NCBI RefSeq assembly: GCF_001194135.2
Contig: NC_068981.1
Location: 2,513,145 to 2,577,125 of the forward strand
Length of the DNA: 63,981 nucleotides
Origin: Octopus bimaculoides
Lineage: Eukaryota
Reading direction: 5' to 3'
The first letter of the stretch is position 1, and each line of letters starts with the position of its first letter. The notes beneath the pieces were generated by a model. That model was not told where the DNA came from and made no database searches. It saw only the letters and a list, made by a program, of their open reading frames with translations. Both the position numbers and the translations under genes were made by a program. Shown here one piece after another: positions 2,327-28,345 of the stretch.

Positions 2327-2370
2327 TCAATATAGAGATAAACCAGTGGATGCTTGGATGTAAGATGTAC
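2327..2370 (-). CDS. Gene A putative last coding exon (G)TSYIQASTGLSLY*
   Basis: Acceptor gctctttctag|GT. A phase-1 start matches the upstream exon. TGA at 2329-2327 is followed by an AT-rich stretch with minus-strand AATAAA near 1565 and 1620. Confidence 0.6.
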
Positions 2371-2720
2371 CTAGAAAGAGCAATTTCTTTTTATACAAAA
2401 CTGTATATCTATTATATATATGCGTACTTCAGTGTGTATGTGTTTGTGTGCTCTTGCCTTGGTATTGTGCAATATGTGTAAACAAGTGCCACCATGATAC
2501 AGGCAGTATTATTCATTTCCAATCTTCCCAGAGAAACATGTCTAGCCACGGGAAAATATCACATTTCTTGGAAGCAGTTGAAGTTTGGAAACAGGAAGGG
2601 AATCATTAGAAAATCTGCCTCAATGGCACTTTTACAAGTTGATGTTAGAAGCATAAGGTTCAAAGGGTCTCAGAAATAATTATGACAGAAGGCTTTCAGT
2701 TGAATATAACTATCTTTTAC

Positions 2721-3135
2721 CTCTTACTTGTTTCAGTCATTAGACTGTGGCCATGCTGGAGCACTGCCTTAAGGAATTTCTAATTGGCTGAATTGACCCA
2801 CTACTTCTTTCTTTTTTTTTTTAAAACATGGTGCTTATTCTATCAGTCTCTTTTGCCAAACTGCTAAGTTACAAGGATGTTAACACACCAGCACCAGTTA
2901 TCAAGCAGTGATAGGGGACAAACACAAATACACAGGCATACACACACACACACATGCACACACATACAAACATAAGTGACAAAGCCTCTTTTAGCATCTA
3001 TCTACCAAATCCACTCACAAAGCTTTAGTCAGCCTGAGGCTATAGCAAAAGACACCTGCCCAAAGTACCACACAGTGGGACTGAACCTGGAACCATGTGG
3101 TTGAGAATCAAGCTTCTTGCCACACACCCGCACCA
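2721..3135 (-). mobile_element. tRNA-derived SINE, family 1
   Basis: Head with B-box-like ggttcagtccc and body ending cagcatggccacagtc..tgactgaaacaagtaa. Other copies near 5218-5600, 37290-37555, 45150-45555, 47765-48215, 48600-48850, 56240-56600, 58668-59025 and 61030-61410. Confidence 0.85.
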
Positions 3136-3263
3136 GTGTTTATGAACACATCAGAATGAGATGCTTTGATTCACAGAACCGAAGGTGGCCTAAGTTTGTT
3201 TAGTACTGGAGAGGCTGACACAAGCCTTTATCAAAATTTAATCGTTAAATATTAAAAGATTAC

Positions 3264-3356
3264 CATAATATGGTGGAATCATGTTATTTGAGCCAGTTGC
3301 TGGTGCTTGTGGTCCAAAAGGAACTGATGGCTGCATCACTGGTGGAGAATACGGTC
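3264..3356 (-). CDS. Gene A internal exon (G)PYSPPVMQPSVPFGPQAPATGSNNMIPPYY
   Basis: ttctaatttctacag|GA...TATG|gtaat; 93 nt, phase 1-1, open, Pro/Tyr-rich. Confidence 0.85.
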
Positions 3357-4851
3357 CTGTAGAAATTAGAAGAATTATTTTGGTAAGTTGTCACTTTTCT
3401 TACTGATGGAAGACAAAAACTGTTTCAATTCATCATCATCATCATTTAACGTCCATTGTCCATGCTGGCATGGGTTGGACGGCTTGACTGGGCTGGCATT
3501 GGCTGCGACAATGATTTCACTTGCCTCAACATGTCTTCTCAAGCACAGCATATTGCCTGAAGGGTACTTTTAAATGGGCCAGTTATGCAGCACTGGCATT
3601 GGCCACGATATAATTTAGGGCTAAGAAGTGGAGAGGATCACAGGAGCATGAGGTGGAGAAGTGGTTCATAGGGCCCCTACAAACCACTCCTCTGCCTCCT
3701 GTCCATATGATCCTCTCCCCATCCTCTTGCTCCTATCCTCCCCCTCCTCCCCCTCCAACTCCTATGATCTTCTCCTCCCCCACTGTCCCTTTGATCCTCT
3801 CTTCTCCCTCTTACTCCTATGATCATCTCTTCCTCCTCCTATAATCGTCTCCCTCTCTCATGCTAATATGATCTTCCTCTCCTCCTCCTACAATACTCTC
3901 CCCCTCTCCTCCCCTTCATGCTACTATGATCCTCCTCTCCCCCTCCTGCTCCTATATTCCTCTTCTCCCCCACTCACCCTATGATCCTTTCCTTCTCCCT
4001 CTGCCCCTATGTTCCTCTTCTCCCCCACTCTCCCTATCATCCTCTCCTTTTCCTCCTGCATCTATGATCCTCTCCACTCCCTCCTCCCACTTCCTTTTCA
4101 CTGCTCTTGTTGCATTCATCCCCTGGTCCTCCCGCCCCCATCTTTCTTTTCCTGTACTGAGCCTCTTTCTACAGTTTTCTCCTCCACTCTCATGACACCT
4201 CTCCTCTCTCTTTCTCATCCTCTTCCCACAACTCAGATTCCTCTTCACTCTCACATCTCTCACTGTATCTGCCCTACTCAACTCGATCCAGTCATCCTTA
4301 ACCTTCCCTCTCTCACTCTATCTCTCTCTCTCTCTCTCTCTCTCTCTCTAACCATGACACTTCTTCCTCTTCCTAATATGATCCTTGTCTCTTCTGCTAC
4401 TCTCTCCACCACCACCACCATGGAATAATTATGATTGAAAATCTTATATTGGTTATGAATGCTTTAAGATGAAATCTTTTGCATCATAAAACCCAAGGTG
4501 GTCTTAGGCAGTTTACTATGAAAAAACTTAAGTACAAGTCTTTATCTAGAATTATGAAAAAACCTTTAAGGATTCAAACTGGTCATATCCAGCCAAAATA
4601 TTCCACCTGTTTTATGTTCAAACTGGCCAGATCTGGCTGCTCACACCTACCCTACAATGTCATTCTAAACAATCACATCATTGAATAAACAATCACACCA
4701 CCATCATCGTTCAATGCCTATTTTCCAGTGCATAACTGGTACTTATTTAATCGACCCCGAAAGGATGAAAGGCAAAGTTGACTTCGGCGGAATTTGAAAT
4801 AAGCTTTATATTAGAGAGAGTAATGTGATAGCAAAATGGTTAAAATATTAC

Positions 4852-26259: not shown

Positions 26260-26380
26260 GTTGTGGCTTGTGGTTTGTTAGGGGTGTGTGTTAGTGTTCC
26301 ATTCCAGTTTCCTATTCAGGCTAGGTTTATCTTCTATTATGTGTGTAGCTTCTGTAATTTGTCTAAGTGCTGCATCTGTG
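26260..26380 (-). mobile_element. Penelope-like GIY-YIG C-terminal fragment
   Basis: TDAALRQITEATHIIEDKPSLNRK, resembling R.I.EA..I....P.LNR. Confidence 0.6.
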
Positions 26381-26670
26381 CTATATATATATAAACAAGC
26401 CCTATAGTCACCTCTTCAGCAAGACACTGGCTCCTCTCCCTCTATCATACTTTCTTATCCCTCAATACTTTACCCAACACAGTTGTGGGATCTTGTGTTG
26501 TGAGTACTTGGTGACCTCACCAATGCTGGTGCCACAAAAGGTAAAAAGAACACCCAGTACACACTGTGAAGTGGTTGGTATTAGAAAGGACAACCAGCAC
26601 TTGAAACCATGCCAAAGCAGACACTGAAACTTAATGCAACCCTCTGGGAAAAGGGACATTAAATGAGGTC

Positions 26671-26904
26671 CACAGATTGGATGCTAAATGCACTTTGCCA
26701 AAGGACAAGAAGCTGAACAGACCAAATGCCTTAAAAGACATATGAAAATCAGAATTTAATTTTGTTAAATCTCAAGTGCCAAATTGGTGAATTGGTCATT
26801 AAACTCTGTAGGCAGGAATGTTTTTTTTCATTACTGTGTCCATTCGGCATCTTGGCTTTGGTTTCTTGTCCTTCGGCAAAAGTGCATTTAGCATCCTGTC
26901 TGTG
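26671..26904. mobile_element. MITE with roughly 40-bp terminal inverted repeats
   Basis: cacagattggatgctaaatgcactttgccaaaggacaagaa ... ttcttgtccttcggcaaaagtgcatttagcatcctgtctgtg. Confidence 0.8.
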
Positions 26905-28275
26905 CATGGTTAAATAATGATGTTGATGATAATGATGTATATATATGTTGTGTATGTGTGTGTGTGTGTGCGTGTGTGTATACAAATGCATACATATAAA
27001 TATATATATATATATGTAAAAGATTTGTCATCGAAATAAAAATGAGCTCCTCATGGCATGTCATTTGTGCCTATGCTCCTCTCCCCTCACAACTCATATT
27101 CCTATCACCCCCTTCCCTCCATCCACCCATGTTCACCACTCACTGCATTCCCATCCCCCGCTCTCTCTCACCCTCCTTTCACACTCTTGCAAGTTTACCT
27201 GGGTTCAATCTGGCCCTGACAAGTCTCTCTCCCCAACAATTCATCTTCCTAACCCTAACCCCTCAATTTGCCTTCACTCACTGCATCCCCCTCTGCACCA
27301 TCTCCCACTCTCATTTCATTCTCTTGTGAACTTACCTGCCCACTCACCCTACCCAATCCTCTGTATACTTCACCTATATCCTCCTCTTTGTAACTATCTC
27401 TCTCTCTCTCTTTTCTCTCTCTTTTTCCAACTGAGGCAGTCATGCATCTCTTCTACTGCAAGGCTCTTTCTATCCCTCTATCATGCTCCTCTCATCATCT
27501 GGCACAATGCCAACTCCCTCGATACTACTTCACCCTCTGTTGAAGGGTTTTCTCTTGCAGGCTATCCAGTAACCTCGTTGGTGATGGTGCTGTGTAAAAA
27601 GCACCCAGTACACTCTGTAGAGTGGTTGGTATTAGGAAGGGCATCCAGCCATAGAAACCATACCAGAGCAGGTAGTCAAGCTTGATATACAAATCTGGCT
27701 TATCAGATCCTGTCAAACTGTCCAACTTGTGACAGCATGGAAGAAGGACAGTAAATGATGATGGTATTCATTCATTCATACATACATACATACATACATA
27801 AATACATACATACAGAGGTGCAGGAGTGGCTGTGTGGTAAGTAGCTTGCTTACCAACCACATGGTTCTGGGTTCAGTCCCACTGCATGGCACCTTGGGCA
27901 AGTGTCTTCTACTATAGCCTCGGGCAAAGGCAAAGACATACATACATACATACATACATACAAACAAACAAACAAAAATACTGTTGTTGATATTGAAATT
28001 CCATTGAAGTAGCCTTGGATCTAGGTTAGAAACCGACTCTTTATTGGCAAGAAATCTTGAAATATAACTGAATAATGATATACATACACTTTTATACATA
28101 CATATACACATGCATTTTTTACAGTCATACATATACACATATCTATTCGTATCTGCATAAATAAAATCATATGTATGTATGTATGTATGTATTTCTTTGC
28201 CTTTCCTTTCCCCTTTCATCTTTTCAGATTTTTTTGTTTCATCATAATTATTTTTTTCTTTCATAAGCCGCTCAC

Positions 28276-28345
28276 TTAGCTCTCAGGCACCATAAAAGTC
28301 TGTCTTCTTTGTATACAATAATTTGTCCTTCAGTCAAGTTTTATA
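28276..28345 (-). promoter_or_regulatory. Candidate TATA box and non-coding first exon of gene A
   Basis: Minus-strand TATAAAA at 28345-28339; donor TAA|gtgagc about 70 nt downstream. Confidence 0.3.

Follow-up and report, generated by a model that had tools for sequence, protein, structure and literature searches.

Which gene, if any, carries the proline- and aromatic-rich pentapeptide array that is open on the minus strand of a 63,981-nucleotide stretch of Octopus bimaculoides DNA (hereafter the window), and what kind of protein would it make? By sequence identity the window belongs to chromosome CM046601.1 of assembly GCA_001194135.2, with a G+C content of 38% and nine runs of N, and its positions 1-9492 and 10287-14927 match locus L001 of that chromosome in reverse orientation at 100%. 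A preliminary description made from the sequence alone had proposed seven minus-strand exons encoding a secreted Pro/Tyr/Phe-rich repeat protein that ends inside the window. All seven do have AG/GT ends and the peptides quoted for them, and the four middle ones are supported by independent gene models, namely RefSeq XP_014772898.1, the older 593-amino-acid (aa) UniParc entry UPI0006952EC7 and the Octopus sinensis orthologue LOC115218319. The identity and exon structure of these four are very likely right, and we consider it fairly probable that the already annotated O. bimaculoides gene LOC106871109 has its 5' part in window 12473-3264, on the minus strand. The main outcome is a correction of the gene model, in which the first reading had caught the 5' part and not the real 3' half. 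The supported exons, the gap that interrupts them and the intron that follows are these (a slash marks the exon-intron boundary):

12417-12473, minus strand: coding exon (x)VNSENFRICQQIGCYNENP plus 1 nt, with an AG acceptor, a strong polypyrimidine tract and the phase-1 donor CCCAA/gtaaga.
9493-10286, no strand: gap of 794 N inside the repeat exon, concealing its acceptor and its 5' part.
9077-9492, minus strand: 3' portion (416 nt) of the repeat exon: 23 units PP[GV][ND][FSY] and then PSFPFQTPSTPYRDSVPPFYDP, with the phase-1 donor CAG/gtaatg.
4852-4971, minus strand: phase 1-1 coding exon GPYSPSTFPQAFPPTMYPPVPSMPTPATYQNNVFPPYYNP, supported by splice sites and gene models; the RefSeq coding sequence (CDS) starts at an internal Met in it, at 4927.
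3264-3356, minus strand: phase 1-1 coding exon GPYSPPVMQPSVPFGPQAPATGSNNMIPPYY, a duplicate of exon 4971-4852.
1-3263, minus strand: part of the intron leading to the next real exon, YYHSNSW...

The proposed protein matched XP_014772898.1, a 440-aa entry named 'uncharacterized protein LOC106871109', whose residues 1-57 are identical (100%) to the translation of window 4927-4852 plus 3356-3264. Residues 58-440 are absent from the window and are encoded by seven exons at L001 17666-34938, 2.7-20 kb past base 1. The gene had been described as largely missed, which holds for the prokaryote-style list of open reading frames (ORFs) but not for RefSeq, where it is already annotated. UPI0006952EC7 is an older, 5'-partial model that starts exactly at the edge of the gap with SPPGNFPP... 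and contains the repeat exon, both of the Pro/Tyr (PY) exons, 4971-4852 and 3356-3264, and the same 383-residue continuation; its residues 1-210 are 100% identical to the window exons. The O. sinensis orthologue, with isoforms X11-X13 of 702-763 aa (E 7e-173, 67-72% identity), is laid out as MNPEIFRICQQIGCYNENP-RPYPPPINS-(PPxNx)49-60-...PPYYG/FYPSYSWHHHS... LOC115218319 is also uncharacterised, X11 being auto-named 'basic proline-rich protein-like', and presents the same order of FRICQQIGCYNENP, PPxNx array, PY exons, mid-region, Q/N/Y stretch and C-terminal domain; it differs in lacking the 14-residue segment of the first PY exon and in having a predicted MNPEIF start with no signal peptide. 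In the conserved parts the two species share 67-78% identity, and six cysteines, including a CxxxxC pair, are invariant.

The 57-nt exon 12473-12417 encodes an N-terminal piece that holds the CQQIGC cysteine pair. Its end had been placed at 12418, one base short of the true donor, and the phase 1 left by that donor is the phase of all downstream introns. In O. sinensis XP_036360000.1 the peptide of this exon is joined to the repeat exon (...FRICQQIGCYNENP-RPYPPPINSPPGNF...), and the models of that species join FRICQQIGCYNENP in frame to R, PYPPPINS and the repeats, the O. bimaculoides acceptor lying inside gap 9493-10286. The lone 'A' contributed by the phase-1 donor fits the Arg codon (AGR) that follows NENP in the orthologue, and as far as the gene models go exon 12473-12417 is part of one transcript with the Pro-rich exons. 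Of the exons between 12.4 and 28.3 kb that had been assigned to that transcript, this one is joined in the O. sinensis models, whereas the two further upstream, 15934-15922 and 23914-23867, are at chance level.

Because the same 794-N gap is present in the public record of CM046601.1, the continuity of the repeat exon and its frame across 9493-10286 are not directly readable; the far side of the gap holds only (CA)n, intron-like sequence, and the RPYPPPINS of the O. sinensis orthologue occurs nowhere in the read sequence of the window. The orthologue has 49-60 units against the 23 read in O. bimaculoides, so that RPYPPPINS and a further ~26-37 units (390-555 nt), together with the acceptor, would fit the nominal 794-nt gap and bring the array to about 50-60 units in one large exon, and continuity of frame across it is implied by the matching phases and by the orthologue. 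The RefSeq CDS of O. bimaculoides starts at an internal Met at window 4927, in the middle of exon 4971-4852. That model is probably truncated at its 5' end owing to the gap that breaks the repeat exon, and the case illustrates how a RefSeq O. bimaculoides model can lose its 5' part to an assembly gap within a repeat exon.

The array itself has a period of 15 nt, with 22.5 copies and 86% matches by Tandem Repeats Finder, and we read 23 units: PPGNF eight times, PPVNF five times, PPGNS twice and eight variants once each. Both Pro codons encode Pro in every unit, and residues 3 and 5 hold most of the variation. The units are uncharged, with one aromatic residue per five by composition, and the PP-x-N/D-x periodicity is common to O. 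bimaculoides and O. sinensis. One could object that the array is 15-nt minisatellite DNA without coding function, and that its inclusion in gene models is an artefact of prediction, given that a stop-free 15-nt repeat is open by construction, that three frames, two of the minus strand and one of the plus strand, are in fact open through it, and that variation between units falls mostly at second codon positions. The array frame, however, stays open for 45 codons after the repeat, up to a phase-1 donor of consensus type with which the phases of the flanking exons agree, and in two species the models preserve one frame and one PP-x-N/D-x pattern over 250-300 residues, flanked by a conserved N-terminal exon and by a conserved C-terminal 380 aa. 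We regard the minisatellite explanation as very improbable, and the proposal that the pentapeptide array lies in a real spliced minus-strand gene is borne out by independent models in two species.

Downstream of the array, a 48-nt stretch spanning the acceptors of the two PY exons is 89.6% identical between them (4955-5002 versus 3340-3386), about 30 nt of intron included, which indicates that the two exons would have arisen by a recent tandem exon duplication. Both carry conserved PPxY-type motifs (PPFY, PPYY).

The 3' end of the gene is where the first reading went astray. It had closed the protein at a short exon just below the PY exons:

2327-2370, minus strand: terminal exon GTSYIQASTGLSLY*, with a weak polypyrimidine tract, in no gene model and at chance level; rejected as the normal 3' end.

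All models instead splice from 3264 into seven exons beyond the window, which add 383 residues. The next real exon, YYHSNSW..., lies 2.7 kb past window base 1, beyond a 2121-N gap that directly adjoins that base, and six more exons follow, reaching about 20 kb past the window. We counted 253 AG sites over the 3.2 kb below 3264, 42 of which have a polypyrimidine content at least equal to that of exon 2370-2327, and 11 of these 42 give tails of at least 14 residues; the tract of exon 2370-2327 (0.53) is the weakest among all sites scored. We are highly confident that LOC106871109 extends past the window and does not stop at 2327. A real alternative isoform with its stop in 2370-2327 would be a short secreted protein made of a signal peptide, the repeat and the two PY exons, without the C-terminal modules. 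Such an isoform would draw on the AG acceptor and open phase-1 frame of the exon, on the ATTAAA signals 184 and 382 nt downstream of it and on the existence of at least 13 predicted isoforms in O. sinensis; set against the rival acceptors just counted and the exon's absence from all three available models of the two species, it seems improbable.

At the other end of the gene, exon 12473-12417 has no in-frame ATG and, if unspliced, meets a stop six codons upstream, so some upstream coding exon is needed. Two had been proposed:

15922-15934, minus strand: candidate 13-nt micro-exon WSSE(G), flanked by simple-sequence arrays; at chance level.
23867-23914, minus strand: candidate first coding exon MKMSFLCMVNFITILL, with signal-peptide-like n and h regions and the phase-0 donor CTG/gtaagc.

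The phase-0 donor of 23914-23867 calls for a 3n+1 linker exon to reach 12473, and hence the micro-exon was invoked. The splice ends and peptides of both are present as described, and neither exceeds what chance would provide. The micro-exon occupies part of a roughly 85-nt island that simple-sequence arrays flank on both sides, and the 11.4-kb interval contains 388 open AG..GT candidates of 3n+1 length, 11 of which equal or surpass it by crude splice scores. Exon 23914-23867 is unique sequence, and within 12.4-34 kb no other hydrophobic ATG exon outside microsatellites has a good donor; comparable non-microsatellite signal-like ATG exons occur at about 5-6 per 128 kb on both strands, with about 0.7 expected in the space first searched. 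Exon 12473-12417 could also be fed directly by any of seventeen other ATG exons, whose donors are in phase 1.

Features beside these candidates belong to the putative first intron or lie upstream. A TATAAAA motif at 28343-28349 on the minus strand, at the upper limit of the range first described, precedes the candidate ATG exon by 4.4 kb, with an 858-N gap between the two, and a promoter role for it is unsupported. Long imperfect (TG/TA)n-type and (ATG)n tracts at 21739-22681 and 12581-12878, in the putative first intron, give rise to many long spurious ORFs on both strands that are Cys/Val-, His/Thr- or Ser-rich. The remaining gaps of this region are:

19439-19654 and 23499-23508: gaps, intronic in all models.
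25182-26039: gap of 858 N, upstream of the candidate ATG exon.

The half of the protein that lies outside the window changes its character. In order, it begins with a His/Tyr stretch, continues through about 110 aa of conserved mid-region and a low-complexity stretch rich in Q, N, Y and P, and closes with a C-terminal domain of about 107 aa that is also conserved. Since the 383 further residues contain two regions that are probably folded, LOC106871109 does not encode a purely disordered repeat protein. The C-terminal 107 residues would probably be transcobalamin β-domain-like (DUF4430-type), a likeness to vitamin B12 carriers that we tested against PDB sequences of human and bovine transcobalamin, intrinsic factor and haptocorrin. 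BLASTP against human transcobalamin gave E 1e-5 over 71 residues, Smith-Waterman scores against the transcobalamin family were reached by 0-10 of 5000 shuffles, and the hhalign probability rose from 20% with a two-sequence transcobalamin profile to 89.7% (E 1.8e-6) with a four-sequence profile of transcobalamin, intrinsic factor and haptocorrin. The 56-71 aligned columns include LEDxLxKA, FxFxT, GxYLxSIxG and an invariant W. The octopus protein differs from the transcobalamin family in lacking the alpha6/alpha6 α-domain and in its wholly different protein context. Short β-domain-only Tcn-like proteins have been described in teleosts (PMC4350170).

For the mid-region (XP_014772898.1 residues 99-155, L001 17666-17986), the stretch NNSDWLVKGFDWPGWQVVATNTSEVALLKKGLKE... 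gave weak matches to two families. One is MltG/YceG, in which 46-58 residues align to E. coli MltG residues 153-209 (PDB 2r1f, E 0.0017) and the NCBIfam model PRK10270 scores E 1.2e-5 to 3.8e-4; the other is the EPS8 SH3 domain (E 0.0047). We rejected membership of MltG/YceG, with 57 of 340 positions matched and scores of 17-25 bits where the cut-offs are 532 and 103. Pfam YceG found no match in the mid-region and TIGR00247 gave 13 bits, both worse than the narrow enterobacterial model, and the match ends before the helix that we take to carry the catalytic Glu of MltG.

Is the product secreted, as first proposed? An extracellular location is slightly favoured, the transcobalamin-beta-like C-terminal domain and the six conserved cysteines being what may point to it, and the structural, adhesive or coacervating role first suggested, for which elastin-like and flagelliform-silk-like pentapeptides would be the reference group, is compatible with the composition of the repeat; a structural or self-assembling role of the repeat may be entertained tentatively, at somewhat less than even chances. 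In the mechanism we propose, the Pro-rich array would form an extended, polyproline-II-like, aromatic-studded spacer able to self-associate, and this spacer would carry two C-terminal folded modules that supply specific binding; the last module would be a transcobalamin-beta-like (DUF4430-type) ligand-binding domain and would probably place the protein outside the cell. Carried to its full extent, this becomes an Octopus-specific secreted protein in which a 50-60-unit uncharged PPxN(F/Y/S) self-assembling rod is combined with a stand-alone transcobalamin-beta-like domain, by analogy a possible protostome counterpart of the fish β-domain-only B12 binders coupled to a repeat that forms a matrix or resembles mucus; or else the transcobalamin-beta fold could have been re-used for another ligand. 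We offer this complete picture as a speculative and distinctly unlikely one. If the C-terminal domain is indeed transcobalamin-beta-like, that fold would reach the molluscs in a novel architecture, and a testable ligand hypothesis would follow.

Several observations weigh against these proposals. The exon joins all depend on predicted gene models, and with the ATG exon 23914-23867 and the micro-exon at chance level the N-terminus is ambiguous. In Pfam, and in phmmer and hmmsearch comparisons with PDB (by sequence and by profile), the C-terminal domain is unmatched, and BLASTP against intrinsic factor alone found no match. The AlphaFold models are unusable (pLDDT 28 for the 440-aa protein and 37.8 for the C-terminal domain), and Foldseek on the low-confidence C-terminal model returned no match at E <= 0.001, only proteasome-type noise. 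The MltG/YceG and EPS8 SH3 matches of the mid-region are weak and mutually exclusive, and we treat them as unexplained. The O. sinensis isoforms X11-X13 start with MNPEIFRICQQ... and have no signal peptide, and N-glycosylation sequons are not enriched over composition.

The last two points fit equally into the main rival explanation, that of a non-secreted cytosolic low-complexity scaffold with a non-signal Met start like that of X11-X13, in which the PPxY motifs (PPFY, PPYY) recruit WW-domain proteins and the aromatic repeats and the Q/N/Y region drive condensates. The lack of a hydrophobic leader in the O. sinensis isoforms, the chance-level signal exon 23914-23867, the unenriched sequons, the conservation of the PPxY motifs and the weak SH3-like match in the mid-region would all suit such a scaffold. 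It has more difficulty with exon 12473-12417 of O. bimaculoides, whose want of an in-frame ATG and nearby upstream stop require another coding exon, with the six invariant cysteines and their CxxxxC pair, and with a C-terminal domain that resembles the fold of extracellular proteins; to our knowledge, the transcobalamin β-domain fold occurs only in such proteins. Taken together, we consider the cytosolic scaffold rather unlikely and prefer, with the reserve just expressed, an extracellular product.

Similarities of the repeat to known systems appear to concern its lattice. Plant repetitive proline-rich and extensin-like wall proteins (PF02095; PPVYK/PPVEK) likewise consist of tandem PPV-x-x units with an aromatic residue in every unit, and they are extended secreted rods that turn insoluble. 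The O. sinensis array scores 118.8 bits against Extensin_1 (PF02095), above its gathering threshold of 105 bits, whereas the window model (40 bits) and UPI0006952EC7 (38 bits) fall below that cut-off; the preliminary description recognised no domain, and in the window part this sub-threshold repeat match is all that we found. The octopus array has Asn in place of Lys, comes from an animal and is flanked by unrelated domains, and we read the Extensin_1 match as a probable similarity of repeat lattice and composition, not as shown common descent. The PPQGY-type C-terminal repeats of cephalopod rhodopsin and the N-termini of galectin-3 and annexin A7, which are thought to be flexible and self-associating, are also uncharged short tandem repeats of Pro and aromatic residues; they differ in unit sequence and in their cytoplasmic or N-terminal context, and neither word-indexed nor all-library HMMER searches found a sequence relationship to them.

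The gene had been called lineage-specific, and its distribution agrees: a HMMER search against 1.84 billion cluster representatives returned only O. bimaculoides and O. sinensis, plus one bacterial protein. We rejected this sole non-Octopus match, a 13-repeat surface protein (Ig-like/DUF11), as a repeat-summed artefact. A word-indexed homologue search with the whole first model returned only XP_014772898.1 and missed the orthologue, and the same type of search with the N-terminal 48 aa gave no candidates although the orthologue shares more than 10 words with them, so that it is uninformative on signal-peptide isoforms. Literature searches by accession, by locus name and for proline-rich octopus proteins found nothing on LOC106871109. 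The gene product is an Octopus-restricted, fast-evolving modular protein, already annotated and unstudied. As a cephalopod gene confined to one genus and evolving fast, the locus makes a clean example; it is assembled from a pentapeptide exon that has expanded, PY exons that were duplicated, and two domains without family assignment.

Elsewhere in the window, Rfam and tRNA scans were empty, and a search for a full paralogue across 24-64 kb gave no more than a weak resemblance to the PY exons at 60.9 kb; a paralogue candidate at 35.5 kb was rejected, with no acceptor and an E of about 4. Pro/Tyr-rich exon-like segments at 62631-62522 and 60959-60746, on the minus strand, have AG/GT ends and a phase-1 join (...YPYSYPSFPLSGQPGFPY-R-QPPMPYVPIPSAYQSHVHPYG...NSNWLKQLLKIKAMRPSNIEINNAAQS), and the stretch PIPSAYQSHVHPY in these upstream segments resembles PTPATYQNNVFPPY of exon 4971-4852. 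Judging from sequence, the 62631-60746 segments probably belong to another Pro/Tyr-rich gene on that strand, some 37 kb upstream and in part paralogous. Mobile-element remains are also present. Retroelement-like ORF fragments lie on the plus strand at 18960-19403 and 23143-23271 (...RLRWYGHVVRMDEDSCVKKC...GRPRKTW...), and a repeat of about 200-300 nt resembling a short interspersed element (SINE) fills the introns in many copies of 85-98% identity, one of which adjoins gap 19439-19654. Copies of this SINE-like repeat are found at:

11767-12071
19655-19888
31829-32036
39035-39287
47229-47646

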